In this document: piece by piece, positions 5,900 to 46,132 of the stretch
Numbering within the stretch: the first letter of the stretch is position 1
Layout of the letters: each line of letters begins with the position of its first letter
Assembly (NCBI GenBank): GCA_010909165.1
Contig: VJWM01000234.1
Span: 124,001 to 188,000 of the forward strand
Length of the DNA: 64,000 nucleotides
From: Anthoceros angustus
Taxonomy: Eukaryota; Plantae; Anthocerotophyta
Reading direction: 5' to 3'
Notes under the pieces: generated by a model
Databases searched by the model: none
Seen by the model: only the letters and a program-made list of their open reading frames with translations
Told to the model about the DNA's origin: nothing
Position numbers and translations under genes: made by a program

Positions 5900-8800
5900 G
5901 CATCCAATCCTTGCTTCAACGCGATGGACCCTTCAATCCTCGCAAGCAAGGCTATTGGAAGAAGATTAAGGCTGCAAGACAAGATACAGAATATAGGAAT
6001 GCAAAGATTAGAATTGCTAGGAAGTATAGCTAGATAGTAGGAGATTCTATACTTATTGCTAACTTCATTAGCTCTATTCTAATCAAAGTAGAAGATCAAG
6101 GAAGGCAGATAGAAATTGCTAGAAGAAACTTGCTTACTATCTTTAGTTTAAGTCAAGTGAAAGCAATAGAACTCGCTCTTGATCATATCCCAAATCTACA
6201 TGCGGTGTCCTCTTCCTCTTCGTCTCCAATGCGGAGTTCACAACAACGCAACAAGCATAGAGGATTTATCAAGAAGTGCGTGATCTCAATGGCGCCTCCG
6301 AGCCGATCCACACATGCCGAAATGTCTTCATCACAAACTTTCCCTTATTGCCGTCATCCCGACAAACACGCAGAGAAAAGATTCTTCTTGCTTTCCTTCT
6401 GATGTTCATGCATGATGATGAAATCGAGGCGCTCGCCTTTCTCTAAGCTGCAGTACATCATGAGCCCAAGTCCGATTCGGCCGGTGATATCTGGGAAGGC
6501 GGAAGGGAGCGAGGGCAGATGAAGTTCTCCTTCAATAGACACCTTATTCCACCAAACAAATCTCATGGCGAATCCACCTCTTCCACGCCTTCGGAGGTAA
6601 CAAAAGAGTGGAATTATTTGTAATTGGTGCGAATTCCTAATCACATGGAAAAGTAGAAAGAAGAAGAATGGGAACCTAGATCGAGGCCCGCCGCTCATGT
6701 TGCTTGAAGAAACACTCTTCATCAACAACACGTGCTCACTATTTGCCTTGCATCCTCTAAGCCGGCCACCGCTTATTGGTACAGACGGTGGAGCAACATC
6801 ACATATCTGCTACAACAAAGACTCCTTGAGTCATACACAGAAGATGGACTCATAGATTCTTGGTGATCACACATTATCTAGCCTCCCAACATTGCCAACC
6901 AACACACGATGCTCGCATTGTAGATTAGGTCATCCTAATGTGATTACTCCATGTCTAGAGACAACCTTCACCCTGTCTCCAGTTCACAACTTAGATTGGT
7001 GAAAACCATTGTCCTCACAAAACATCACCAAGAACCTTTCAAAATCCATCTCCTGCCAAGTCACCTTTAGAATAGAACACATACATTTGTGGATCTCTAC
7101 ACCCTAATGGTAGTAGATGCTTCAACTTTTACCGAATTCCGTAGCCTCTCCACATCCTCACCCAAAAGAGTGAAACTTATCGCAATTCAGGATTATAGCT
7201 GGTCACCTTAAGAAAACTCAGAGACAACTCACACACCTTGTTCCCCAAGGTTCACACTTAGAGCTGCAGTCACAAAAGCATCCATCACCAAAATCCATTT
7301 GAAAGTCACTAGAATCCCCTCCAAAGACACATAGTAGATACTTAACTTATCTTGGTGGATCCTTCTCTCCACCCTCTCTCTCGCATGTTGTTGCTCCTCT
7401 CTCATCGGATTTCTGGCATGGGCGTAAAGGCTTCTGATCACAAACTCAAGACCTTACGTTCCGACAACGGTGGAGTTTACATCTCATAGATTTGCTGAAT
7501 TTTGTCGAGCAGGCGTAGCTCAACAAGTGTAGTATACACTCCTCAGAAATGGCGTGTGAAAATAAGAATCTCCGCCTCCAAGAGATCACGGGTTGCTGTT
7601 AACACAAGCTAACTTATCCAAAGCTTATTGGTGAGGCCCTCCTTACGACAACCTATCTCATGAATCGCGACTTCGAGTTCAAGGTATGACTCCATATGAA
7701 GCATTCACCGGCAACAAGCCTTCCATAGATCACCTTGATTTTTGGATCTCAGCATATGTCTTTATCCCTAAAGTACAACGAAGTTAGATCCAAAAATGCC
7801 AAATATCTATTTGGCTACACAAGGCATCAAAGGTTACAAGCTATTTGAACCCACCACGGAAGCTTATATATGCCGAGTGTTACTTTTCATGAGTCTTACC
7901 TCTTTTCCCCAGTGGGGGTGGTACATCCGAGGGCGTCTCTTCCAAGAGCCCTCGAGATACCTCCTCATTTGATGATATCGATTATATCACTCAATTTCCA
8001 GTTCACTGCTCGTGTTCCGTAGTTGAACCTCTTGCGGAGGAGGAGGAGTTAGCATCTATTCCATGAAACACCACCGGATGGCGACAACATTCAAGTCGAG
8101 GAGCCGGTTGACACTCTTATGAAGAGCATGATGACCCTCCGTGAATGACATGGAGCACCATGATCCTATTGATGTTCCTCCGATGGAAGATGCACCGTAA
8201 CCTACACAAAGGTACAACTTAAGAACCCGTCCGCAATCCCGGACCCGCGGGATGGAAGGAACCTCCTTTAGGATATCTAGCTGTTTTGATGATCCTATTC
8301 CCCTGTATCACTTTACTCACAAGCTGTATACAGGCAACCATAGATCAAGAACCTCTTACCTTAAAACAAGCTTTCTCTTCTCCGAAAAGCCTTATGGAAG
8401 GTAGTAGATTCGAATATAACTCTCTCATTAGTAACTCTACATGGGAATTGGTTAAGCCACCTAAGGGTAGGAAGATAGTCACCAAATGGGTATTCAAAAA
8501 TTAAGAGAAAAGGAGATGGTTCCATTGAGAGATACACGCGCCTTGTGGCGATTCACCCGGATCGGGTTTAGATTACCTCCCATGGGCCATTCCAGAGTAA
8601 AGTTTGCTTCCCTTAGAATAATCTTCGCCTTATGACCCATCATGATCTTGAGCTCCATATGATGGATGTGAAGACAACATATCTCTATGGCCGTCTTCAA
8701 GAAGAAATCTACATGAAACAGCCCAAGGTTATGAGGTTAAAGGCAAGGAAGATTGGGTATGCAGACTAATTAAAGGCTTGTATGGCCTTAAGCAATCGGT

Positions 8801-9899: not shown

Positions 9900-10860
9900 A
9901 GTCCAATATTCTATTCTAAGTCTTGAACAATCATCCTCAATCTCTTAACATAGGCTTTATCCTCGTCCTCTCCTTCATACATAGTTGAGGCTCTAGAAAA
10001 TAATATTAAAATATTAAATAATATTTTGCTAATTAAAACTTTTCCATATTTTCTTAACCTCAAGAATACTCACGATAGACATGGATCATATGCGGAAATT
10101 CTTCACAGCATACATAACATATCATGTATCTTAGTTTCACCGGCAAACATAGGAGCATGGTGGTGCAATTCTCCCTTTCATATTAGTGATTATATAGATG
10201 AGCTTCACATCATCACCCTTGGGATATATGCGGGTTTCCGAACCCTATGTTTCCTATTCTATGTGTCTTCTTGGGGCGGAAAAGAAACCTAAAAATGGGC
10301 AAGTTTTAGCAAGAGAAAAATAAGTTAGAACACCTTTTTAGAATCACAAAAGCATGTCTACCTTTTCATTTTTCTCATTTTCTTCATTTTCATTTTCATT
10401 TTCCTTTTTCCCATAATTTTCCATACATAAATCTGCAAAAATAGTATCAGAAAATTCATCACAATTAATATTTTTGAAACTGAAAATGGTCATTTGAAGA
10501 TGCCCACAAACGGGCTTACAACTAGGTGCCTCTCCCTCATGACAAAGGGGGCATCCATCTGCTCAAGGTGCCTCCCTTCACGGAGGAATGCCTTATACCA
10601 TATCTTACTTGAGATTCAGCCTCTCCATCATGAGCGGGAAGCCCTTCAATGAAGATTCTTCCAAGCACTTGATCGAGAGAACAATCTCGATTTCTTCTCC
10701 ACAAGCTTTTGAATCTTCCTCGACGATCTCTCTCACACGTGGTGACGACATTTGATTGAGTGCTTGGGATTAGCGAGCACTTTGAGACAAATTGAGACAA
10801 GACATGGGGCATCTTTAATTTTCCGGCTTGGGTGAGACACTCCGCATATGGCAGCACTCA
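9900..10860 (-). other. Putative antisense multi-exon gene in the Copia 3' region
   Basis: GT-AG introns on minus at 10519-10433 and 10361-10289 flank a stop-free 71-bp exon (LCMENYGKKENENENEENEKNEK); a third acceptor at 9994-9993. Confidence 0.5.
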
Positions 10861-11544
10861 CACATCAATTGGCGATCTTCCGGCACTGCGACACCTCCAC
10901 CTCTCCGGTGACTTCAACATCAACGAGCTCCGGACCACTTCATCCCACGAAAGCGTGGTGGGCTCTCCACAAAGGTTGGAATCCATTTAGAGGCGGGAGG
11001 ATCACACGCCGAGGGGCGTCTGCTCTTGAGCGCGTCCCTCCCCGGGCGCCTCCTCTTCTTCTTCCACGCGTGGCCACTTCTACATGGCCGCACCACCGGG
11101 ATCCAGCACATGGGCGGGCGCCCGAGGGCCCGCGCCCTCCTGGCGCGCCCCCCAGTTTCTGGGCCATAGGCCAAGTTCTTTCTTTGCGGGAGCGCGGGAG
11201 GCGGGGAGGCGAGGCGAGGGAGGAATAAAACCGTATGGGAGGGTACATAACCCCCCCATGGCATACGGCATCATATGGCATGCCCATTAATGGGTTTTCA
11301 CTTTTACCTCTTGGTTTTTTAAGATTAACCTAGTTTAAGTTTTACTTTTACCTTTTTACCTTGTTTGGAATTTACCATTTCCTAATTAAGTTTTTGGTAA
11401 TTAATTTTGATTACATTAAATTCTGCTTAAATGTAACTTAAGCCAGTTTTAATTGTTTTCTTAGTTGGATAGCTTTCAAGTTAGTGGGAGCTAACTAGCC
11501 TTTTAGTCTCATTTTGAAGCCATTCTTCACACCTAGTTCATAGT

Positions 11545-11553
11545 GAGTGGGAG
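11545..11553 (+). promoter_or_regulatory. Polypurine tract
   Basis: GAGTGGGAG immediately before the 3' LTR. Confidence 0.8.
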
Positions 11554-11832
11554 TGATGAAATATGACCTATTTAGGGCACTCTTCACTAGGGCACCTAAG
11601 GCTATTAATTAATTTAGTTCTTAGGGCTTTAGGTAGTTTAATGAGTAGTTGTTACAACCACTTAGAGGTTAGAACTACTTATGGTTACAACCACCTTATG
11701 GTTATAACCACCTAGCCTATATAAAGGCTTTGTACTTTCTATTATTATCAATGCATACAACTCTTTTTGTGCAAAGCTTTCTACTATCTGCTTGCTATGT
11801 TTTGCTACCTAGAGCAGCTATGATTCTCATCA
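11554..11832 (+). repeat. 3' LTR (279 bp)
   Basis: Direct repeat of 5466-5736, followed by AGCGC. Confidence 0.95.
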
Positions 11833-12630
11833 AGCGCCGGGGTCATTCATGCGGATGGTGACCAATGTCTTCCGGGATTTCTTGAGGGACTTCATGGAGG
11901 TATTCCTGGACGACTTTTGTGTGCACGGTGAGGAGGACAAGCATGTTGGCCACCTGCGGAAGTGCTTGAGCAACAGGGAAACCCATGCCTCTGGGAGAAA
12001 TGCTACTTGACGGAGGAATCCTGCAGCATCGGCATCGTAGCGAGGATAGAGGTGGACCAAGACAAAGTCCGGGTCATCCAGTCCCTGCAACCGCCCACAA
12101 ATCTAAAGGAGTTGCGAGGATTCCTGGGCATGGTGGGTTACTACAGACGGTTCATTAAGGACTTTGCTAAGTTGCTGCCAATTTTGAGTTGCCCGGAAGG
12201 AGGAGGAGTGGGCTTGGACATCGGAGAGAGAGGCAGTTGAGTTTGCACCACCTTGATAAGTGCTCCAAGATGAAAGGTCCGGATCGGGGTGGCGGTTTCA
12301 CGTATATGTGGATGTGGCGTTTGCCACATCGGAGTTGTGCTCAGCCAAAAGGACGATCAGCGGAGGGATCATCCGATCTACTACGCTGGAAGGCAGCTCA
12401 CGCATGCGGAACGGAGGTACACTACCACGGAGTGGGAGGCGCTGGGTATGGTGTACGCGGTCAAGAAATTCAGGCACTACCTCCTACCCAACGAGTTTGT
12501 GTTCTATGTGGACCATTTTGCGCTCAAGCATCAAGTGAATAAGGCGGACCTGTCAGGGCGAATTGCGAGGTGGATTCTGTTACTCCAAGAGTTCACCTTC
12601 GAGGTGGAGACCGAGCGGCGGCACTAAAAC
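11833..12630 (+). mobile_element. Ty3/Gypsy pol continuation (RT C-half, RNase H)
   Basis: FMEVFLDDF, LRGFLGMVGYYRRFIKDFAK, YYAGRQLTHAERRYTTTEWEALGMVYAVKKFRHYL. Confidence 0.92.
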
Positions 12631-28889: not shown

Positions 28890-31060
28890 CCGCCTTATGC
28901 GAGGAGCAGAGCGATGACGCCTTTAGACGGTCCGCCTAACGGCCTCGACCTTCTCGGCCATGACGCCCCTCTTCCTAATACATTATTTGCTAGCTTGCAA
29001 AGTGACATTTCATGTGGATCATTTCACGTTGAAGTACCTTGTGAACAAGTCGTTGTCGTGACGGATAGCTGTGGTATCTGCGCCGCAGAATTGATGTGAT
29101 AACCAAAGCCGGAAGCAACATCTGCATGCAGACTTCATTTCTCGTCTGAAAACCGGAGAACGACTTGAGGCCATCATGACCGCCACCGAAGAATTGGTCG
29201 CCACAACGAATGTTGAGGGAGATGAACAGGAGCAGCGGCAGTTGAGTGATTTAGAAACCCACGGGGAGATGGTGGAGTGCCAGCAGGGGCACACAGGGGC
29301 GCGAGAGCCGCGACCCCAGGGTGAGCAGTCAGGAGGGCTGCAAGCGGAGGCCATAGGAATGGCGAAGAATGATGAGGGACTTGCAGAGGAGCTGCAGGCG
29401 GAAGGAAGGGGGAGTGACGCACGCACAGGGCGTGCTGAGGAGGTAGGAATGCTAGGGCCCAGGAGCGAGGATGGCCCTGAGATGACATGCGAGAAGGGAG
29501 ATGGTGGAGAGTCCACATCCCAAGAAGTGCTCGCAGTGGAGCTACAAGGAGAACCATCGGTCGACCATGGGTCGATAACAGGGATGGCTGCACAAGAGGT
29601 ACAGCGGGGCGAAGAGGTCACCCAAAGAACTCGGTCTGGACCCGAGCGTAAGGTCAAATCAACAGCACCAGGAGGAGAGGAAGAACTTACACAGGAAGTA
29701 CAAGACGACGAGCTACGAGGCAGAGGCTCTACGGCTCGGGTCGAGCAGGAAGGAAGTAGATTGGCAAATGAGACGACCCTATCCGGGACTGCCAATAGGC
29801 GATCCGGCCGGAAACGGCGTGGTATGAATGGAAGGAAGAGACTTGAACGTGAGGGTCAACCATGCCCAAGACATTTGCTGAACGGCGAGGTCCGCAAATT
29901 CCTGGAGCATGGAACCATGCCTGATGGTTTATCTCGAGAAGGGCGCGCAGTCTTTATCCATAAGGCCGCACCCTATTGCCTAAGGGAAGGAGTCCTATAC
30001 AAGCTTGGCCCGGACGAGAAGATCCGACGGTGTCTCGAGGCTGAAGAAGCAGCACTCGTCACCGAGGCATTACATGCAGAAGAGGCCGGCGGCCACTATT
30101 CAGTACAGGTGACCGCGAAGAAGATCTTAAATGCAGGCTTCTGGTGGGCTACAATGCACAAGGATGTGTGGGAATTTATTCGGAGGTGTGATGCGTGTCA
30201 GAGGGTTGGGCGGCCTACACTGTTGACACAATGGCCCCTCACCTATATATTACCGCTAGCACCGTTCGAGAAGTGGGGAATCGATTTCGTGGGACCGATC
30301 AAGCCACCCACCCAGTGGACAAGGAAGCAGTACATTTTGGTGGCCACGGACAATTGCACGAAGATGGCGGAAGCGGAAGCGACGAGAAAGGACGACGCAC
30401 CTGCAATTGGTCAGCGACCGGGGAACCCATTTCCTCAACTCTGTCGTGGAGTCCCTAACCACCTACTTCAACAGTCGACATCGAAAGACGACCCCAAGGC
30501 GAACGGATTGAGAAGACGAACGGGTTGTTATGCACGATCCTCACCAAGGTAACTGTAACACACATGTATGATTGGGATGCTAAATTACATTTAGCACTGT
30601 GGGCTTACAGGACCGCGGAGAAGGTAACCACCAAAAAGACCCCTTATTATCTGACATATGGAATGTCCCCTGTTATGCCTGTGGAATTCGAAGTACCTAC
30701 CTATAGGATCATAGAGGATGAACGCATGACAGTAGAAGATAGTCAAGTAGCTAGGTTAGAGACCTTCGTAGAATAGGAAGAACGTAGAGAAGATGCCTTA
30801 GAGGAGACCCAGGGGATTCAGGAACTCAGGAAAGACCGACATGATGGGAAAATGAGGAAGCAGGAGGTTATCGTAGCTGGGGATTTGGTTCTTCTATACG
30901 ATAGTCGGTACCTGGACTCTCCAGGGAAGTTTAGACTGAGATGGATGGGACCCTATGAAGTGGTGGCAGTATATGAGAATGGATCCGTGCAACTGCGAGT
31001 GCTAGATGGGGATTTAGATGCCAACTAGGGTAAACGGGTGGAAGGTTAAGAAATACCTCC
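28890..31060 (+). mobile_element. Gypsy RNase H end, linker and full integrase (copy 2)
   Basis: 458-aa ORF 29176-30552 with H-H-C-C zinc motif and WGIDFVGP; WDAKLHLALWAYRTA; C-terminal RWMGPYEV. Confidence 0.92.
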
Positions 31061-32062: not shown

Positions 32063-34111
32063 ATGCCTCGAGCAGGAAAGGGCAAGGGAAAGGAACCGCC
32101 TGCCAAGGGTTCCTCCTCGCGAGGAGGAAAAGGAAAGAAAGCGTGAGCCTGGCGCCAGTGTGAGGGGTGAGGTCGAGATGCCTCAATTCACTGCTTTGTG
32201 GGCACCAACCCCGATTGGTGATTTCGCAAGGCGAGGAAGATGACATCCAATTGTATGGCCGCCAATGGGCCTACACCAATTTGGAATTGATTGAGGAGTG
32301 TTACATCAACCTCCATCAATCGGAAGCCCTTGCGCTGCCGAGAGGAATGCTCGAACGGATCCCCTGGCCGGACCAGCATTCAAGTGTATGGAGACCGAGG
32401 AGGAGAGCTCAGAATTTCTCCCTCGAGAGGACAAATGGAGGGAAGAGGATTGCCTCTCGAGATTCCGCAGAGTCCTCGACATGATGGATGGAGGAGTGAA
32501 GGCCCACGCCAAGAATGGTGGAAGACTGAGAGATCAAGGAGTCAAGGAGGCTTTCTAAAGATTGTGTTGGGGTTGGTAATATCCAACGGACTTTATTTCA
32601 GCACCAACTTCCTCCAATTTTTGTGGAAGATTTCAGAGGAGCCAAGCCGGATTGGGGCACCATAATGTATGAGGCTATACATCACATGTGGAGAAGCTCC
32701 TCAAGCCAAATTCGTGGATGAGGAAGGGCCAAGGCTGCTATCTTAGCACCTATTTGGTGCATTTGTGGGAAACCGAGGGGCTCTCACAAGAAGGAGCTTG
32801 AGGATGCATGGCATCCCTTTGAAATAATCCATCCAAGCTTGAAAGGCCTTTGCCTTTGCTTGAGGAAGACATGGGAGGTCGACTCCACAAGCAGAGGCCA
32901 AGGGCGGAAGTGAGGCAACAGGTTGCCGGGAGGAGGCCTTTCCCACAAGAGCAAGGGGAAGGAGAGGAGGACTATGTGGAGGGGTGACAACCCCAAGGGT
33001 GGGGGAGTCCCCACCATCTCGTGGGTGCCTAGGGAAGAGGCACTCCCCACCCCAGGGAGGCACCACCCAAGGTGGCAGTATCACCGAGGCAAGCCCACCA
33101 CGGTAGGTAGGCATCACCGAGGGAGCATCACCGCAGCAGGCACCACGCCAGGCAAGCACTGCGGTGGGGGGGGAGAAGGCGGTGAGCGCCTGGCAGCCGC
33201 CATCACCGCTACCGGGTGGAGAGGATGGAGCGACGGAGGGGACCCGCTGCCGGAGCACGAGGGAGCTGGAAATTTCCAAAGCAAGAAGAAGGGGTGAATT
33301 TGGGCCCCTAGACGGAGTGCTTGTGAAGCACTCACCATGTGGATTTGAAGGCTAGAACTAGCACCTTGTGGGCATGCAAGAGGAAGTGCAACCCAAGAGA
33401 TGGCAGGAGAAGACCAAATGGCACCAGGCCATGGAGTCCGATGAGAAGGCAGCCAAGTTGGAGAAGGTGGAGAAACTCACAACCTTGTGGATCACGCGCT
33501 GGAGAAGGTCTTGAGGGAAGTTGTCCCAAACGGAGGAAAGAGCCATCCGAGCAACCACCCAAGGACTCATGGAGATGTGGAGGAGCATTTTGCCCAATTA
33601 GAGCAAAGGAAGGGCAAAACCGAGGCTCTAGGAGAGAAGGCGGTCCAAAGAAATGGACGAGGATGTGTGATGGCTACCCAAGCCATCAAAATCCGGGACA
33701 TGGAGGAAGAATTGAGACGAACCCGGTACAATCTAGAAGAGAAGAGCGCGGAGTTGGAAGCTCAAGACCAACAATTGCAGGAGCTGGAGCACAAGAAGAG
33801 TGCCTGGCAAGCGGAGAGGGAAGGGCTTGCTCAGCAGCTAGGGGACTTGGAAGGAAGGAGGTCCCAAGAAGAGGAGTACCACAAGAAAGTGGTACATAGG
33901 ATGCTGGTAGTAACGAAGCGGAGGTTCTGGGCGGATTATGCCCTTCTGGTAAAGATGGCCAACCAGCTGAGAGAAGCGAGGGAGGAGAATGTAACCCTCC
34001 ATATGAAGGTGGGGGAATTGACCACCGCGAGAGACGCCTACAAGAGTAGGTGTGAGGATGGAGAGTGGCCCACGGAGATTGATGATCTCCAAATGCAGTA
34101 TCATAGCTTAG
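32063..34111 (+). CDS. Gypsy accessory ORF2, 5' part (interrupted by the DNA transposon)
   Basis: GCCACCATG start, GKGKGK, PDWGTI-type domain, coiled-coil ORF 33487-34111; frame continues at 43175. Confidence 0.65.
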
Positions 34112-34145
34112 AACATGCTATTTAGTGAAGGGGGTGATTATTCAA
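34112..34145 (+). repeat. Left TIR
   Basis: AACATGCTATTTAGTGAAGGGGGTGATTATTCAA. Confidence 0.93.
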
Positions 34146-34969
34146 CATGAGGGTTTTCTGCTATTTATTTGCTGAAGGGGGTTTTGGATGGGTGTTGAAT
34201 CCGATGTTCACCGCTTGTGTTGGAAAAGATGATCAGAAAGAAGGGTCAACAACTACACGAGACAGTGCTTGCCGGTGCGTGACATGTGGAGCAAGGGTTC
34301 TAGTTTACACCTATGACGACTTTAGAGCCCATTTACAACCCAAAATTGAGGGCCATGACTGCCGGTGAAGATGAGTACATTTGACGATGCCCCACAAACA
34401 ATCGGGAAAACATGGTCCAACCAATGTCGAACTCTCATATTTCAAGTTTCCCCAGAACGCTTCAGCGGGTGGTGGTGGTATGGGTCATATGAATCCTTCG
34501 ACATGGAATTCATGGAATCGTGGGTGCAGGGCGCCGGCCAGCGCCCGCACCGCCTCCCACAACAATCCGTAAAGTGATGTCATCTCCTATCCCTTGGTAG
34601 GTTGGAGGAATCGATTTTGAGACAAGAGGTCTGTGTGTCACCAACCATCCGACAGATGCTATGTATAGTCATGTGACTAGCCGTGATCAAAACGAAAGTG
34701 CCGGGTATGGATGCATTATTAGTGCATCGTCGCAAGCCCTAAATGTGCACATGCTCTAAATGTGCAAACAAAAGGGTGCCCCTCGAATCGCTAGTGCTTT
34801 AGGACGAAAACTGCTCAAGGTTTGGAGGGTGGAGTTTCCATCGGCTAACATCTTGTAGAATATATGTCGCTTTCAAACTTTCCCCAAGGAGAATGGGCTA
34901 CAATGAACGATCGAATGTGTCTTACGGTTTCCTTCTCAAAATAAATGAGGCTATGCGCACTTTTAACAT

Positions 34970-37900
34970 TCAAGTGCAATCTACTCTCCTTCTAAATTGA
35001 CGCTCATCTTCTAGGATCACCGCCATCTTCACTCCTCGTGCCACTTTGACTTGCTTGTATGAAGCCCGCAATTCATTTTGTCCTTGATTGCCTCTCACCG
35101 ACATAGATGTTTCCGAATTCAAGGTGAAACCATAATACAAGATGACGGTTTTGTGTACATAAACTTCAATATTTTTTAGGTTCAACCCTTCGACCCCTTT
35201 TCCTTGCTTGTTGCTCGCATCCCCAATTATGTATTCTTCAACGTACCTACCCTCAAACGCATCTGTGTGCTCGCTATCGGAACAAGTAAGTGAGGTCGGG
35301 TCATCAAACAAACCGTCAATCACCTTCCCAATCCAAAATGGTCTCACAGCGTGTCCCCGCCGGGCCGGAACTGCAATGAACATGCCCTTATTTATTTCCA
35401 ACACATCACCATTCAAACGTGTCATTCCCTCCTTGTCTTTCCAAGTTTTGGTATCGTCCCAAATACATATCTCGTTGTGGAAGGTCCTCAACAACGCCTG
35501 TAATAAAGCTTCATCATCAAGTCGCAGAGGTTGGGTCTATTCTACTGGACCTCGAATACCACTTCCAAGGATGCCGGAGGAGCCCAATGTTGTTTTGAAC
35601 AATAAAGAATCTCTTGTTGGTCCACCCGAAAGCTTCCCACCATTTGTATTCCTCCGATGTCACATAAGGCCTAAGGGCCGAAAGACCTTCCTTCAAATGA
35701 GCCACACCATCCGTAGGTGATAAGTCCGCCAACTTTCCTTTTCTATCCCGACCGGAGGGCGGTTAAGGGAGTCTATGTGTCCAACGGCACGAATGTCAAA
35801 AACTCCAACCCGGCCTCGCCTCCCAATAGGTGATGTGGAATCTTGCTCGATGCGATAAACCCACGGTCACCTTTGGCTTCTCTCGTAATTTTGAATTGGT
35901 GAAAGAGGTTGTTTAATTTTTGACCGCCTTGTATGCGTGTCCACCTTCCCTTGCCTTATGGGCCAAACATATGACCGGAAGTCCAGAACTTCAGTCAATA
36001 TCTTCACCTCCGGCTGTGGAGTGTATGCACTAATCAAAATCTCTGACAGTGCAGGAAGAGTGTGAGCTTCCTTGTGTTTTAAGCTTTTTGAAAAGCATGA
36101 AAACATTTGGTCGATTTGATCATGCGTGCCCCACCAACAAAACCCCACTTTCACCTTTTCAAACGTCCCCATGTCCACGAGCATGTTGAGATATGCAAAA
36201 GCAGCTTGATTCTTGTTCTCTCTGCATGTTGTCCAATTGCAAATATAACACTTTCGGCAATACTCCTTCGTAGTTATGAATAACATCACGGATGATGGTA
36301 ATCGTGAGATTGGCATCATTCCAAGTTCGCATAATGCAAGTAAGCTCTTGCCTTAAACGTGTAATTGTGGATCATGCACCCAACCACATGAACTGAATAC
36401 GGCACTCCTCATCCAAGTTCTTTGGCCATCAAGTAGATGGGGAATCTCCTTCTTTTGGTCCATTCCATCGATTGAAAGTAGAAGGTACATATGTGGTTCT
36501 ACATAACTCTCCTCGTTTCGCCATCTTCACCGCCTCGATGTAACCGCAAACGATGGGCATCTAAAGCCGCTTGATATTTTTCTGCTTGAAAACATACACA
36601 CTCGTACATTTGAAGAGACATCGAGTTAGATATGAAGGACCCTCCTATGCTGGGACAGTACACTGCCTGGGCGGCGTCCCGCCCCAAATCAACGGAGGAA
36701 GAACCTTCATGTTCCGTCCTAGCGCATTTGTCGCTGGCAGCAACCACAATCCATGCCATCGGTTAGGAGGCGGGCCGCCACCGCCCACATGTATAAATTG
36801 TAGGGTGACCCCATGGTCCTTCGCCATGTGGCGCGTATCCCGAGGAACCTAGGTGCCTGAGACTGGAGGTGGGGCCGGCCGCGCCCATCTCCGTGGGCTC
36901 TTAACGCACCATAGGGTTCTTGGCCCGGCCCGGCGTCCCACCACATGTCGGCCTCTGGGTTTCATCCCAAGGGCTTTGCATATGTGGGACGACGGTCGGC
37001 TGGCATCGCACCCCATCCCATCATAGCAAGAATTGTAAGACTCGATTCTAGGGTTCTTGCCCATAAGGCCTCGAGTTCAAAACAGCTATTCCCCACTCAA
37101 GAAAACCATTTCCATAAGTTCCCATGCATGTCAACCAGCCCCGTCAATAGTGGTAAGAATTACCTTAATCGGATTTGTGGATTGTGTTCCTATTAGTGCT
37201 CTTCAGACCTGCGCATAGTGAGCACGTGGAAAACCTGTTGGATTTCGGTATTTTCACTCTTGGGAAGTTGCTTTTCCATAACTTCAAGAACCATGGATAT
37301 TTCACATAACGGATCCCAGAGGTTTCGCATTGCCGACATACTCCATATTTCCAACCTTGTGTATGCGGAAGGTTGAAGACCTCCACGTCGGCACCGCTAC
37401 CATCATCAGAAATGTCTTATCCATCCAGGATATCGCTCCCAGCGCATAAGAAGACTGTGGTTTGGGGTTAGGCCTGAAACCATCCCACGGGGCATTTGAA
37501 ATGATTCTACTCTTAATTCCTCATATCTGTTGTGCCCTATGCAATATACTCTTCTAAATGCCTTCAAGCCGAGGAATGGACCCCAAAATGTGTGTGCATA
37601 CTTTACCCCTTTCACATCCCCTCTCCGCTTGAACCAAGGACTCTAGAAATGTCTCTTGCCCGCCCATCCTTAGGAATCGGTGCTCCGAAACTTTTCTTTG
37701 TCACCGCAGCACATTTGATTGCAACATGGTTTTGAACCGCCGTCACTACCTCTCCTTCACTTTTCTTCAATGTGACACCAGGCTCTGAGGTGCAATGCTT
37801 TGCTGATCCGTCTCACCGCTTGGGATGGAACGACGACGGGTGTGTCCGGAAGTGGTCACCTTCATCTTCATCCCTGAGGGTTCGCCCGGTGGGAGGTCTT

Positions 37901-38520
37901 CACCGTGACCACCATCAAACAATCCCTGGCAACAGTGGTGGTCCATGCCAGCTTGAGGGATGAGGACTCGAATTGGATCGGGAGGTAGATGGGCTCCCCT
38001 CAATGGCTGCGATAGATGCAAATTCCGGGTGTGAGGCACACCGCATGTTTGGTGACGCCAAGTGTCGACGCCTGTAGAGCCTACATGGGCGGTGCAATAA
38101 AGACTTAACAAGCTACCGACGCCTCTTCCAAAAGTGGGAAAAGCGGTAACCACAACAAACCTTCATGTGGAGGACTCCTATTGCCGAATATGTGAACTTG
38201 GAGGAGCGTTCAAGATAGCGAGCCTCTTCCTCTGGACCATGTCTCCATTTCTTTGGAATTGCGAGGGGCCGTCCTCCACTTGAACCTCCGCGCTGTGCAT
38301 GGTTGCAAGTTGCATATCGTATCATGAATGGTATGCGGGGAAAAGACAATGGCGAAACAAGACCAACCTCATCTCCAGCGCGTGCGTCAAATGCAACATC
38401 GCACGCACTTATCGCAATGCGCAAGGAAGGAAAGCACAAGACTTTGCAGCAGAGGTAGTGGCTAGCGATATCGCCTCCCTGCTTTGCTATATGGCGTGGA
38501 CGGCCTCGCATCCCGAGTGC
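34970..38520 (-). CDS. DDD/E transposase, Sola/DUF7869-like (frameshifted)
   Basis: FPRVKIPKSNRFSTCSLC (~37260-37210), SIDGMDQ (36475-36455), DANLTIT, LYLQLDN-CRENKN (~36248-36208), frameshift-corrected LLVGH-HDQIDQMFS (~36140-36100), C-terminal RPFWIGKV. Start uncertain. Confidence 0.75.
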
Positions 38521-39022
38521 CACCGCCTAAGAGGTTGATGGGATTGCCTCAAATAAGTGCGGGACAATGAAGTGGTTGACGGCGTGTACGTGATTGTAAC
38601 GGAAAATCCAAGCATAAGCAGCCACCGGGCGAAAAGTTGATGGGGCGGTAAAATAGTAAGCTCGGTCAAAATTGAGTTTAAGGTAGCGGGTTATTTTAGA
38701 AAACACGGTTATGAAAACCATTTGGGGTTATGGAAGAAAACCCTACTTTTACACGCCGCTTAACTTCTCGTTAAGGCCTCCTCTTTGAACTTAAGTTCAA
38801 GGCACTTTGCCGCCGGTATGTCCGTGTTCGAGCGCACCCACCGCCAGATCGCCGAGTGAGTGAGCACACACCGCCCGTACCGCAGCTCGTTGGAGCGCAA
38901 CTCACTGCGGATGCGCAAGCTCAGCTAAGCGGCGCCAAGCTCGAGAGGCAAAGGATCTCTTGAGTTAGCGGTCAGGCTTTGTGCATCTCTTTGTGATTAC
39001 GGAGGTTGAATTGCAGAGATTG

Positions 39023-42000
39023 AAGATGGCAAGGAGGAGCAAGAAGGACCAGCCTTTGGAGGAATATGACCGCCCGCCATGCGAAGCCCAAGAAGGCGAG
39101 GAGGCTCAAAGGCGAGGCACCCGCGCCCACGGCGGACATCGGGAGGCACCTCCATCCGTGTCGCCGGAGACATCTTGCCATCCGCCATGCTCCAACAATG
39201 AGGGGAGGGGCATTCTTGGGCAAAACGCAGCGATCCTCCGCCAAAATCAGTTCCACAAAGGTTGGAGAGCAAGGGACGAAGAAGGTTGGTAAGAGCGAAA
39301 CAACCTATTCCACCGATTCCTCAACCTATGAGAGAGTCCATATCAGCGTATCCGGGCAGCTCGACAATGTTGTGGTTGTGGAGAAGGATGCTGTGATCCA
39401 CAACCCATCGACCGCAATGCGCCATGGACCCTTTGTTGAAGTTGTGGATCATGGGATATAGGGGGCTCGCCAAATCAGAGCAAGAGCGGGTTGTTTTGGG
39501 CTACTTTGGACTTCAATGAAGGGAGCGAGTTCACTTTTTGTGCACCACAAAGGCATACCAAGATGAGGAAGTTTCCGGGATCCGCTTTATACAAGTCTCT
39601 TGTTCTTAGCAAAGGGTTTCATTGGAAGAAGTGTGCACCTCGTGGCCTTGTTGAAGATTTCCGCGATTCCATGCGGAGGCAGTATTGCCTTGCATTCCTT
39701 CGTAGCTTCTTCACATGTGAGAGTCATTGTGGATATTCCTACCATCTTCCGTGCACCACTAGTTGCGAGGGCACTCATACGAGCTATGCGAAAAGATTAC
39801 ACAAACTATGAGGGCAAGAGGGAAATGTCTATGCCGAGCCCAAGCCTCCATACAGAACTGTGATGTGGTGGAAGGTATGGAAGAAGATCATGGAGAGTGA
39901 GCTTGGCCCATCGACGAGGAAGATGGGCTTTACCATTGGTCAAGCGCATTTGCACAAGGATCCGGGGCGTGAATCGGACAGAGATGCCGAGGACCTTCCC
40001 AATCTCTAACTCCGACTCCTATGGTTCCCACCATGCAATATGACCCGGATGGCAAGGCGGCCGGCCGCGCCCTAGTCATGTCAGTTCCCCAAGAGCGCCA
40101 ACGCCGATCCGGACGGTTTATAAGATTCAAAGGAAGGTGGTTTGGGGCGCGCCGGCCGGCGCCCTCGAATCCTCCACCACACAGGCAAGAGAGCAAGATG
40201 GCAGGGCAAGCAGTTCGTCCCGGAGAAAAGGACATGGCGGATGGGGATGTGGGTATGGAGGAAGAGGAGGGGCGCGGCCGGCGCCTCCTCAACCTTCATG
40301 CCCCAAACAGAGTGACCTCGAGTGGCGCGCAAGGGCAAGGGAAGTGCAGAAGCACCGCACGCTGGGACGGAGAATTGGGAAGGAAACCAAAAAGGCAAAG
40401 AAGGGTGGAAGAGAAGATGCCATAGGAGGGGACATAACCACGCTCATATTCAAACCGACGAGGAAAGGTTGGAAGAGGCTATGAGGGATGCGATCCATTG
40501 ACTCGCTTAAGGGATTATACTCAAGAAGGTGGTGCAGAAACGTTAGTGAAGTTGGAGAACTTGAGCCGGCAGATACATATTACCCGCACGCAGGGAGGGT
40601 TGATGAGGCTTGGGCAAACTATCTTGCCCGTGTTATAGCGAAAGGGCGGATAGAGGAGGGAGTTCCTTTTGTGTATGATTGATCCGAGCGATGATCCGCA
40701 TCGGATCGAAGCAATGGCGTGCAAAGAAGTATGTCATGGGAGTTCTTGGTGGTAACCACACCTACGCAGCTATGAAGCACTTATCGGATATCTCACCCGG
40801 AAAGAAGCGGTTCCAATATGTTGAAGCACATGTGTATTGTGGGCTTACTGTGCATGAGATGCGGGTGCTTGCAACAGATCACAATATGATGTCCGACAGA
40901 AGAAAGAAGATGAACTTTATAGAGCAAGTCAGGTATTTAAGGGACGAGTTGATCATCGCAAAGAGGGAAGAAGTGCAAATGACCATGTCCTGAAATACAA
41001 CTGCATAAAGTCCTAGGTTTGATTGAAGACGGCGAAGGGCGGAGGACGAGTGTACAAGCGTAACAAAGTGGACAATCGGACCCACATTCTGTATTGCTAA
41101 GGTGATGGGAAGGTGTGGAGAATGTGGACAAGATTTTTTCCAAATGGGAGGAGAGCCTAATGAAGAAACACGCTCGCAAGGAAAGGCAAGCGGTCATGGA
41201 TGACCCGCAAAGTTGATAGTGTATGTCAGAGCCAAGACATGTTGGAAATCTTTTCGTGAATACCATTGGAGAGTGTGGCCAAGAAAATCGATAAGCGCCA
41301 CCGAGAAGGTGTTAATGATGATAGATCCTAAGGGGATGGAGGAAGAGATCACATCGGAAAAAATTTCATATCATACAAGTAGCAATGGTGAAGCATCTGC
41401 GTCATTTGAAGAGGTGCGCGAGGAGTATCCTTTACATTCTACGGACAATATGCTAGCACGATTCCAAATTTCTCCGGAAAGGTATGTCCGCATCGTTTTT
41501 TCGTCATTAGGGGACCGGGATCGATGCGCCGGCCGGGCGCCGGCACCGCCCCGCCCTCGCATATGTTTCATGATGTTTTACCGTCATGCCCACTCATATG
41601 GTTTAGGCCGCCAGCCGCCTTCAATCCAACGCGAAAAAATGAGGGCCGCCGGCCCCTCTCCAATGACTAACGACTTTCGCAGCAATTGAAAGACATCAAG
41701 TCGACAAAACTCCCAGACTTCCAAAGATTTTATTTTCGAGATAAACAATTGGAAAGGGGCTTGAAGACGAGCTACAGATTAGCGACAAGGACCGGAGGAA
41801 GGTCTTGAGGTTTTCAAGGCCCATCAACAGAGTACAACAATACCAAATCGAAAGTCGTGATGTACAAGATATGGTTTTGTAAGGCAAGACACACTTCGTC
41901 ATGGATGTGCCCCGAGGTTTTAACATTGGACCTATGGACAAGAGGGTGGATAAGCAATGATGGATTCTGCCTTCCAAAGCTTTTGAGAAGACCACTAGCG

Positions 42001-42770
42001 ATGAACCGAGGATGATTGTGATGCATGGAGTGGAGGAGGCACATACGCTAGAGAATCAATGCGAAAGTGGAGGAAAGGGGCTTGGTGTCGCTCGTATGGG
42101 ACAAGACAAACATGAACAATGTGGGTGGATTTGAGACTGTGGAATACATAACTATCTGGATGGGAAGGATGGGAGCAAAGGAGAATCAATGCTACCAAAT
42201 GCTATGCATGGAACATTCAACAATGGAAGGTCCGGCTCTCATGACACGCTTGTCAAAAACAGTTTACATGTCACATGACAAGTTGGTGGTCCGCCTTACC
42301 GAGACCACTAGGGTTGATGACGAGACTTATTACAACCTTCTCCAAAGAGGGAGATTGGGTTCGGATGCATGCTCGGGAGCGGCACAACTCAGTTACTTGT
42401 GAAGGAGTTGTATCGCCATCGACTTGAGATGTGCGGTTATATTTCACAAAGAATTCATGGATTTGAGGTGCTGCAGTTGAGGAGTTGAATTTTGAAGCCC
42501 ACCGAGAGGACTTGACGCCTGGGCAAAGGAGGTTTGCATTAGCGAAGGACTCCTTGAAAGCACAAGTGGTTTCTTTGAGTGCCCGTCGGAATAAGAGCAG
42601 ATGGCGATTTGTTGGAGGCTGGCCAACAAACACTCGAGAACGCTGGGCGCGCGTATGGTAATGATGAAGACAGATGGGAACGAGGACTCGAGGGCTTTGG
42701 TTGAAGTCGACACTTTCGATGAGGAAGAACTTGAGCGGATACGAACTTGTAGTTTATGATTCGGTGTCAC
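39023..42770 (+). CDS. ParB-like domain plus beta-class N6A/N4C DNA methyltransferase domain (one fusion or two ORFs; frameshifted)
   Basis: VLGGNHTYAAMKHL...LATDHN (~40740-40885); MDVPRGFN (41901-41924); LVWDKTN...VEYI (~42091-42150); RPLGLMTRLITTFSKEGDWV(L)DACS(G)SGTT (42302-42389); CIAID (42409-42423). Outer limits approximate. Confidence 0.8.
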
Positions 42771-43140
42771 GCAAGCACCGTTGAGTCGTTAGCCTGACGT
42801 GTAGACGTTTGTAGTGTGAACTTGTATGTGCTAGTGGTCAATTTTGGCGGAACCTGTGGGATGGTCTCCAACTTGCGAGATGACGTGCACATACCTAGTT
42901 TTGTTGTGTTATTACTAGGCCTTTGTCAATGTGGAAATGGATCATCGCACAAAACAAACTACTTTTGAGGACTGCGCCGGCCCCGCCCCTTGACCCTTCC
43001 TTCCGGTTTTGTTGTTTCACAACCGCGATTCAACAGAGGAATCATTGTCCATGGTATGGGACACCTGGAAACCCGAAAAAACACGGTTTTTGGAACCATG
43101 TGTTATTAGTGAAGGAGGTTTCGTTCAACCAAAAGGGGGT

Positions 43141-43174
43141 TCGGATATTCACCCCCTTCACTGAATAGCATGTT
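43141..43174 (-). repeat. Right TIR
   Basis: Reverse complement AACATGCTATTCAGTGAAGGGGGTGAATATCCGA. Confidence 0.93.
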
Positions 43175-44200
43175 TTAGGGGCTCACCTCCACAACAGAAT
43201 TTTGAAGGTCAACAACGAAGTCTTACGTTTGGCCAAGACGAGGACAATAGGTCCTCATGATGATGACCGGAAGGAGCTGCAACAGGTGCAGCTGGAGGCC
43301 TCAGATTTTGATGAGGCCACAAGTGACATGGACTCAAGAGTCGGGAGCCTGAGAGGAGAAGAGACCGCGCGCCCAAAGGGCGAAGTGGGCGAGAGCAAGG
43401 AGGGGGACAGCCGCCTCCGGGGTCACCACCTGTGATGACCCCTACCACGGTAGGTGACCACCACCACGGGAGATCTACCACGGTAGTCCGCCAGACTACT
43501 GGTAGACACCACCACGCCGGTAGTCCGCTGCATCACCGCAGGTGTGGCGCGGAGCCCTGGGGAGTTGGGCCACGGAGGCTTGGCTGTGAATGAAGAAGCC
43601 GGGGGGTCCGGTAGTATACCCCCTGGAGAAGAAGGCGAGGTGGTGGGAGAAACAGCCCCACCGGAGGAGATCAAGGGCGGAGTCAGATCCGCCGAGGAAG
43701 GGAGAGGCGTGAGAAGTTCCCTCACCCCACGAATAAGGGAAGAGCCAGGGCCAGGAGAGGAGACCAACGCTAAGAAGGCCCGGAGGAGTTAGTGGAGGCA
43801 TCGGCCAACAACTGGGGGAAGAAGACTCTTTGAGAATGCTCCATGATAGGTATGGACAAACCAAACAGAGGAAAGGAGCAAGAGGATTCCAAACCAAGGG
43901 CACCGATGGAGAGAAGAAGAGATGGGGACCGACTACCATGGTAAGTCACTACCCCGTAGTCCGCATCACCGCGGTATGTCGAGGGAAGGAGCGCCAGGAG
44001 GCGAGGTCGAGAGAAGGGCGCCCCGAGTGCGGAGGGGGGCGATGATGATGAGAGTCAAGGCGCCGCCCGCATGGAGTTGGAGGAAGGGGCAATTGTACTT
44101 GCCCCACACATTAGGAAGACGATGATCTGGGGAAGCAGAGCAAAAGGAGGGCGAGGGAGCCAATCCAAGGACACGCCACCCCAAATGGTGAGACTAGGTA
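43175..44200 (+). CDS. Gypsy accessory ORF2, 3' part
   Basis: In frame with 33487-34111 after removal of the transposon; then low-complexity Pro/Glu-rich sequence. End approximate. Confidence 0.6.
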
Positions 44201-45259: not shown

Positions 45260-46132
45260 CCAGCCTTTCTTCTGCGGCAACAGTCCAAAGGCTCGAATCT
45301 GCACCGCTGTAACATTACTGCCGAACCACCTGTGCTTGGAGAAGGAAGGCGAGAAGGAGCCGGAGAAGGCGTTGAAGTGTCGCTCATCGTGGAGGACGAC
45401 GCCGCCGAGGTCGAACGCTGACGGCCTTTTACACCCAACATAACTCATTCACCACCATGCTCGCCGGGCGTGAACTGGAAGCCTCTTGAAGGAGAGCGCC
45501 TGCAATTTTGGAGATGGAATGTGTGCGGCCACCATCACTGATGAGCCTCGAATAGAGCCATTCCGAGAGGACACAATGCTTGAAAGTCAAGTGGAAGGGA
45601 GGCCGAGCTTGGACACAAACTTCGAATTTCGATAAGGGAGTACCTAAAGCAGCAAGCTGGGCCCGAAGATAACGAAACTTCCCAACATAAGTACCAATGC
45701 TCTCATTATGATGCATGCGTAAGGAATAAAATTCGTTACGCACTGTGACTAATGTCATAACATTGGTAGATTGAAAAATATCTACTAGCTGCCGCCAAGC
45801 CTCTGCAGCAGTAGTAGCCCCATCTGTATGATGTAGTGTGACTTTGTCAAGGCCTAAGGTGAAATAAGAATGTGAAGTGCAAGCTTGTCTTGTTTGATCC
45901 AAGAGTCGAGAGCAGCAGAGGGACCAGCAGGCCGTTGAATGGTACCATCCACTATGCCAAGCAAGTCACGAGTGTTGAGTATGGAACGCATACGCTTGGC
46001 CCATATCTCAACTTTTGTGCCGTCAAAACGGTCTTTTTCTTTGAATTCAGAAGAGACATTCATATAATTAATAATTGGTGTAGGTGGCATCGTCAAAGAA
46101 GAGGACGGCAATGCCATGGTTCTGATGATCAA
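45260..46132 (-). CDS. Copia gag (frameshifted)
   Basis: FKEKDRFDGTKVEIWAKRMRSIL...DLLGIVDG; TTAAEAWRQL..IF; LRMHHNESIGTYVGKF. Confidence 0.88.

Follow-up and report, generated by a model that had tools for sequence, protein, structure and literature searches.

Remains of a Sola1-like transposon with putative ParB-like and beta-class DNA methyltransferase cargo in Anthoceros angustus

Introduction

The closest described counterpart of the locus reported here is Sola1-1_Ec32, a 21.5-kb transposon of the brown alga Ectocarpus in which a gene on the opposite strand encodes a ParB-like domain and an N4C/N6A (cytosine N4/adenine N6) DNA methyltransferase (PMC12477816, Genome Biol 2025). The product has been proposed to bind and modify the element's own DNA (PMC12477816). 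We analyzed a 64,000-nucleotide stretch of the Anthoceros angustus genome (contig VJWM01000234.1, positions 124,001 to 188,000 of the forward strand; hereafter the window, numbered from its first letter) in which a sequence-only reading had noticed a methyltransferase inside a cut-and-paste transposon. The best explanation, to which we give a probability of about 85%, is that positions 34111–43174 hold one old, dead cut-and-paste transposon of about 9 kb with a DUF7869 (Sola1-like, DDD) transposase and, on the opposite strand, cargo composed of a ParB/Srx-like region and a beta-class N6_N4_Mtase. Compared by description, the algal and the window elements share a Sola1 or Sola1-like type, the placement of the cargo opposite the transposase and the pairing of ParB-like and N4C/N6A methylase domains. 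They differ in host (a brown alga versus a bryophyte-like genome), in size and state (21.5 kb with a 1104-aa product versus about 9 kb, decayed) and in the D-V-P-R-G motif of the window copy.

Related cargo has been described in other algae. The Plavaka elements of the red alga Bostrychia carry PAG2 and PAG3, a ParB-2OG (2-oxoglutarate)-oxygenase and an N6A-methylase-SET protein, with inverted-repeat arrays nearby (bioRxiv 10.1101/2025.02.11.637652). Arrays of this kind beside a ParB gene recall the palindrome arrays of L004, one of the three contigs of relatives (L001, L003 and L004) that we used for comparison, but the algal elements belong to the Plavaka/CACTA-like superfamily, and each of the two domains has a gene of its own there, ParB with the 2OG oxygenase and the N6A methylase with SET as fusion partner. 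Dam-type enzymes fused to ParB and helix-turn-helix (HTH) domains are also known from chlorophytes and chytrids (Iyer et al., PMC4738411). The association of a methylase with a transposon is, therefore, already known from Sola1 in Ectocarpus, the self-modification hypothesis included (PMC12477816), and related cargo is known from green and red algae. We found no report in the literature of the module in land plants; what is new here is that a land-plant-like genome, Chara and the fern Adiantum have it as well and that the catalytic motif has an Arg variant.

The enzymes most similar to the cargo fall on both sides of the divide between prokaryotes and eukaryotes. Phage fusions, such as that of Monoglobales phage CHVD 5762 (XPP57955.1), have the same order of domains, ParB_N and then a beta-class PF01555 methylase, but are 24–29% identical to the transposon family and have a canonical ParB_N, in place of which the family shows a divergent motif, GGNH[ST]xxA, not recognized by Pfam. 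A long middle region sets the transposon proteins apart from the phage fusions, as does, in L003 and L004, a coding sequence distributed over several open reading frames (ORFs). The N6-adenine methyltransferases CcrM, M.MboIIA, M.BceJIV, M1.HpyAVI and M.RsrI resemble the family in fold, motif order and Asp-first motif IV, with profile E values of 5e-11 to 1e-7 and Foldseek values of 6e-14 to 3e-10. They carry DPPY, whereas the family carries D-[IVLA]-P-Y-G, has no restriction partner or cell-cycle role and resides on a eukaryotic transposon. The bdelloid N4CMT and the Marchantia DN4MT1 are likewise eukaryotic members of the beta class of PF01555 with a prokaryotic ancestry, and the fold of N4CMT matches that of the family (8.6e-12). 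Both are, however, host genes linked to N4-methylcytosine (4mC) and have SPPY or TSPPY as their motif, and N4CMT has a chromodomain, lacks ParB and lies much further from the family by sequence profile (6e-4) than the N6A enzymes do.

Results

The peptide strings on which the methyltransferase had originally been proposed were all present when we re-read the sequence, on the + strand of 41841–42426 and in three reading frames. Frame 3 holds YQIESRDVQDMV (41841–41876), FVMDVPRGFN (41895–41924) and GSGTT (42375–42389); frame 1 holds LVWDKTN (42091–42111), VEYI (42139–42150), DACS and CIAID (about 42410–42424); and frame 2 holds RPLGLMTRLITTFSKEGDWV (42302–42361). The region of motif I, which binds S-adenosylmethionine (SAM), is made up of RPLGLMTRLITTFSKEGDWV, DACS and GSGTT, each in its own frame and joined by +1 shifts at 42362 and 42376. 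These are the two one-base frame changes that the sequence-only reading had placed at 42362/42363 and 42376/42377, and the frameshift-aware alignment to the intact relative in L004 recovered both.

We aligned the methylase domains of the relatives to window positions 41700–42520 with a protein-to-DNA dynamic programme that tolerates frameshifts. The domain of L003 scored 119, against 35.0±5.5 (maximum 61) for 150 shuffled proteins (z 15, Gumbel P 1.6e-9), and only 41 on the reverse complement; the more distant domains of L001 and Chara reached z values of 4.7 and 3.9. Further, we searched all 2779 six-frame, stop-to-stop pieces of the window with a hidden Markov model (HMM) of the family, built from alignment A2, and gave it no guidance on frame. 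Ranks 1, 2 and 3 went to 42245–42424, 42052–42399 and 41883–41957, all on the + strand and collinear with HMM positions 164–183, 85–104 and 24–39, respectively.

The family to which the segment belongs can be followed from an ORF 900 nt upstream (40679–40993, +) that contains the motif GGNHTYAA. A phmmer search of 1.84 billion cluster representatives matched this ORF to 23 proteins, among them GBG86584.1 of Chara braunii, two proteins of Adiantum nelumboides and several metagenome or Logan proteins. GBG86584.1 is titled 'DNA methylase N-4/N-6 domain-containing protein' and has PF01555 downstream of the matched domain; the methylase likewise follows this domain in proteins from Adiantum and from metagenomes. 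L001, L003 and L004 also have a ParB-like region followed by a methylase domain with the motif series of the window. In the family, the series starts with D-[IVLA]-P-Y-G-F and W-x-K-x-N-V-K-N-x-G-G and continues with Y-Q-K-P-R-x-L-L-D-W-M-V-x-H-F-S-x-x-G-D-W-V-L-D-L-C-S-G-S-G-T-G and C-V-A-V-E-x-D. All motifs are retained in 22 further family fragments (53–74% identity); a word-based homologue search with the methylase region of P0026 retrieved just 2 proteins. The matches to PF01555 all pass the gathering score (L003 orfC 3e-9, P0049 2.5e-12, P0046 2e-8 and Chara 6e-7), and the window copy reaches this family only via its frameshift-aware alignment to these relatives.

Comparisons with known structures lead to the same class of enzyme. 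The family profile matched M.MboIIA in the PDB at 5e-11, as well as M.BceJIV, DpnA/M1.HpyAVI, M.RsrI and CcrM, the last aligned across the whole domain. An AlphaFold (AF2) model of P0046, whose core has a predicted local distance difference test score (pLDDT) of 85–98, matched CcrM at 6e-14 in Foldseek, and its first 38 PDB matches were all beta-class DNA amino-methyltransferases with the Rossmann-like methyltransferase fold. The window has the beta-class order, with DVPRG (41904–41918) ahead of GSGTT (42375–42389), as do the relatives. We assign the window segment, as first proposed, to the relatives of the beta-class N6_N4_Mtase (PF01555) enzymes. A phage-like origin had been suggested as well, and the nearest prokaryote-side relatives are indeed phage genes, several of them annotated as ParB-like with ParB_N and PF01555; we place the family as a divergent eukaryotic branch of these phage-type ParB-methylase fusions. 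Because motif IV starts with Asp and the N6A enzymes are the closer neighbors, the predicted specificity favors adenine N6, with cytosine N4 less likely.

Between L003 and L004, nonsynonymous divergence (dN) is 0.22–0.39 over 138–333 codons, synonymous sites are saturated and neither sequence has stops. The dN/dS ratio of this pair is undefined owing to the saturation, and the comparison is to be read qualitatively. The low dN, the saturated synonymous sites and the absence of stops indicate that the cargo gene has been under long-term purifying selection in other hosts. Among AlphaFold DB clusters, the best matches to the methylase fold (1e-27 to 1e-25) are 'DNA methylase N-4/N-6 domain-containing' entries that share the A0A388 accession prefix of the Chara entry; several of these clusters are separate, which suggests an expansion in Chara. 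The Chara protein GBG86584.1 (P0001) has 1825 aa with two ParB-like domains (about 148–219 and 1120–1195) and one methylase, and is probably two element copies joined by gene prediction.

The methylase had been described as lying inside an element with terminal inverted repeats (TIRs), and this description is borne out. An inverted-repeat search found 33-nt arms at 34109–34141 (+; AACATGCTATTTAGTGAAGGGGGTG...) and 43145–43177 (−; also recovered as a pattern match with 1 mismatch), which are 91% complementary and 9003 nt apart. The terminal 25-mer is confined in the whole window to these two ends, with 0 occurrences expected by chance. A target site duplication (TSD), TTAG, flanks the element at 34107–34110 (catagc TTAG aacatgc) and at 43175–43178 (...gcatgtt TTAG gggctc). 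A duplication of TA, with TA followed by RAACATGC, is a possible reading of these ends and less economical than TTAG. The transposon sits in a coiled-coil-like ORF that reads …EIDDLQMQYHSLEHAI and then …NNEVLRLAKTRTIGP…, spans 33487–34125 and resumes at 43179–43435 (+) after the right TTAG.

The remains of the transposase occupy 35321–37732 on the − strand, as delimited by Pfam and by alignment to L004. Within them, the ORF at 35867–36319 (−) matches DUF7869 (Sola-like, DDD) with an E value of 5e-25, and the whole region is collinear with the L004 transposase, with the three common acidic motifs IDGMDQKK, LQLDN and GHTHDQIDQ and at least 14 frame changes. L001 and L004 repeat the layout of the window, in which the − strand codes for a DUF7869 transposase and the + strand for the ParB-methylase. 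Since two independent contigs share this two-gene layout, we interpret the methylase as integral cargo of this kind of transposon and not as a nested insertion. The transposase and the ParB-methylase of L001 look intact and lie between perfect 35-nt TIRs (CTAACACGCATTCGCGAG...; 219–253 and 8272–8306), a state that suggests recent activity of the element. L004 has a third gene downstream of the methylase (10783–11895, −), encoding 370 aa with a weak match to DUF8039. By frameshift-aware alignment, neither this gene nor the N-terminal exon of L004 has a detectable counterpart in the window copy.

The cargo of the window copy survives as a series of decayed blocks on the + strand. The ParB/Srx-like domain, with its GGNHTYAA motif, and the middle region span 40665–41464 and align to exon 2 of L004 with 86 identities in 251 positions, 3 stops and 6 frameshifts. 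The N-terminal half of the methyltransferase (41799–42071), which contains motif IV (41904–41918), aligns to L004 exon 3 and L003 orfB and has 2 in-frame stops. It is followed by a central block at 42082–42162 (GLVSLVWDKTNMNNVGGFETVEYITIW) with the W-x-K and E motifs, the counterpart of Chara FVTWCKPNTTNPGGPKLV and of the consensus W-x-K-x-N-V-K-N-x-G-G. The C-terminal half (42232–42436), delimited by alignments to L003 and L004, carries (K>R)PxxLxxxLI, GDWV, LD-x-CSGSGTT (motif I) and CIAID; its counterpart in L003 is the part that matches PF01555 at 3e-9. Frame changes at about 42304, 42362, 42376 and 42405 break it, and at least 3 frameshifts separate it from L004. Counted over the whole ParB-methylase frame (40665–42436), stops number at least 5 and frameshifts at least 9. 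The window copy yielded no contig from one RNA run of the same sample, and no RNA run is listed with it. From its sequence, we classify the window copy as a pseudogene in a dead element that would do nothing today. In the spacer between the ParB/middle and methylase blocks lies a GC-rich run (ggggaccgggatcgatgcgccggccgggcgccggcaccgccccgccc, 41515–41560).

Other copies in the host genome were examined in the Logan contigs of a small DNA run (X1), in which unitigs are short and contigs less than 80% alike were not counted. These contigs accumulate over the blocks of the ParB region and the methylase, with a summed word depth of 200–680, and none falls on the spacers at 40142–40597 and 41510–41623, the latter including the bins of the GC-rich run. 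The high summed depth over the coding blocks indicates a multi-copy family of which the coding blocks are the most shared parts. The copies vary by assorted small indels, and the lone contig across 42302–42445 has further indels of its own.

Motif IV of the window copy reads D-V-P-R-G (41904–41918) and departs from the canonical (D/N/S)-P-P-(Y/F/W). The relatives from other organisms all have D-[IVLA]-P-Y-G, and D-I-P-Y-G aligns on the DPPY of M.MboIIA and M.BceJIV. The earlier contrast of DVPRG with DPPYG is, therefore, sound as regards the Arg, which is aberrant, and mistaken as regards the second position, where a residue other than Pro is the family norm. Nor does the Arg look like a sequencing error, as had been considered. 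Its codon (41913–41915) shows no alternative letter among the contigs of run X1 at a summed depth of about 265, and the residue is apparently common to most copies. Replacement of Tyr by Arg is, then, apparently a lineage-wide change in the A. angustus genome. The aromatic position of motif IV provides, in amino-methyltransferases, the stacking contact with the flipped base. Active N6A RNA enzymes of the KsgA/Erm type have N-[LI]-P-Y, also with a second position other than Pro, so by analogy the family form D-[IVLA]-P-Y-G may be active. We know of no active precedent for Arg in place of Tyr at motif IV.

Copia, gypsy and DNA transposons form a mosaic around the element. The GC content of the window is about 50%, against 39% in Apopellia endiviifolia, which is rejected as the source on this ground. 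A gypsy pol ORF (29176–30552) has its best named matches in the liverworts Calypogeia, Riccia and Marchantia (47–55% identity), which supports a plant host, probably a bryophyte. Immediately beyond the right end of the element, at 45429–46132 (−), are remnants of copia-type gag (Retrotran_gag_2, E 1e-12).

The N-terminal domain of the cargo is weakly indicated to be ParB/Srx-like by modeling. For a model of P0019:345-520, the ten best Foldseek and the seven best VIA matches were ParB, Spo0J, Noc, PadC and KorB, over 66–68 residues at 3.1 Å. The invariant columns of the domain are G-x-x-H and GL...N. ParB proteins have GxxRxxA, and Srx has GGCHR, where these columns sit. L004 also contains two repeated palindromes (L004:2294-10004 and L004:12222-13921), with TTCATGATATCATGAA occurring about ten times between the genes and subterminal arrays of GTTTCACGCGC(N3)GCGCGTGAAAC. 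The half-sites GTTTCACGCGC and GCGCGTGAAAC resemble bacterial parS, and the palindromes are possible candidate binding sites for the ParB-like protein.

Discussion

Several observations weigh against our interpretation of the locus as a dead Sola1-like element with ParB-methylase cargo. The pieces of the window copy, taken singly, match neither Pfam nor PDB sequences because they are too short and broken, and homology is, therefore, demonstrated through the relatives. The ParB/Srx-like assignment has to contend with the absence of a ParB_N match in Pfam for the window ORF and for ten relatives, and with a profile of the ParB region (A3) that came back blank against the PDB. Direct alignment to a phage ParB-methylase with hhalign gave an E value of 0.34, on the GxxRxxA box, and the P0019 model (AF2, pLDDT 75) produced its matches at E 0.2–1.2, a TM-score of about 0.3 and Z 4.4. 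The name Sola1 is based on the 4-bp TSD, the DDD-type motifs, DUF7869 and the parallel in Ectocarpus, and not on Repbase Sola1 sequences. The left end of the L001 element has CTAA and its right end TTAG, which is no clean direct duplication; these letters may be part of the TIR or may be the flanks of two insertions joined in the assembly. The genome-wide presence of the Arg is read from fragmentary contigs, and methylation and DNA binding by family members are predicted from sequence and fold.

Other explanations of the locus fare worse. If the resemblance were fortuitous, motif-like short strings would have arisen over three frames of repeat-derived DNA, and every piece is, in fact, insignificant when alone. 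The frameshift-aware score (z 15, P 1.6e-9), the collinearity of the best three of the 2779 pieces and the homology of the ParB-like ORF 900 nt upstream to proteins that carry the methylase (E 1e-13 to 1e-17) refute this explanation, and its probability is negligible. We give equally little credence to bacterial or phage contamination, or to a recent direct insertion from bacteria, as the source of the gene. Outside the eukaryotes, the named relatives nearest to it are ParB-methylase fusions of phages, but identity to these is just 24–29%, and the closest relatives of all are eukaryotic, namely annotated proteins from Chara braunii and Adiantum and the contigs L003 and L004, whose cargo is split into separate ORFs. 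Furthermore, the gene lies between eukaryote-type TIRs, beside a DDD transposase and flanked by copia and gypsy sequences. We consider contamination refuted for this locus by these comparisons. The suggestion that the element writes its own mark of N6-methyladenine (6mA) or 4mC fails at this copy. A working enzyme that marks its own DNA would agree with the recognizable motif order and SAM-binding residues, yet the stops and frameshifts of 40665–42436, the loss of the catalytic Tyr, the broken transposase, the divergence of the TIRs to 91% and the lack of any RNA contig or listed RNA run over the copy make it very improbable. The sequence as it stands already contradicts an active gene here.

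At the level of the family, and compatible with a dead element at this locus, the ParB-methylase of this genome might be a pseudo-enzyme with D-x-P-R that, if it was kept at all, served DNA binding or recruitment and not methylation. The DVPRG of the window against the uniform D-[IVLA]-P-Y-G of relatives in other organisms, the invariant Arg codon in run X1 and the base-stacking role of the aromatic residue all speak for it. However, the contigs of that run are short and include only those at least 80% alike, and the Arg could be no more than the signature of a master copy in which the methylase had already lost its relevance. We regard the pseudo-enzyme as possible, though on balance unlikely. 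Slightly less probable is a broader scenario in which Sola1-type elements with a ParB-methylase spread in streptophytes and reached high copy number here with the change from Tyr to Arg, their product serving as a pseudo-methyltransferase for DNA binding or having an altered chemistry; in such a scenario, the family could be a source of the amino-methyltransferases of land-plant hosts.

Under our preferred reading, of one old Sola1-like element with ParB-methylase cargo, the protein of the intact family members, which have D-x-P-Y-G and F-x-G-S-G-T, would probably bind the DNA of its own element via the ParB-like part. Its methylase part would probably modify adenine at N6, or with less likelihood cytosine at N4, within the element or close to it. 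Such methylation could flag the element as self, or it could influence how the element is silenced or transposed, in line with the proposal for Sola1-1_Ec32. In the Arg lineage, where Arg replaces the base-stacking Tyr, the enzyme was for this reason probably catalytically impaired, or it was dispensable, already when the family spread in this genome.

A transposon with a DNA-modifying enzyme of its own could place epigenetic marks on itself or escape such marks. Because the copy in the window is dead, the locus alone adds little to the understanding of mechanism. Taken with its relatives, it extends the module of Sola1 and ParB-methylase known from a brown alga to the plant lineage, namely Chara, a fern and a bryophyte-like genome, and it defines D-x-P-Y-G as the real catalytic motif of the family. 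The variant in which Tyr is replaced by Arg would, furthermore, offer a natural test of whether the element needs methylation in order to spread.

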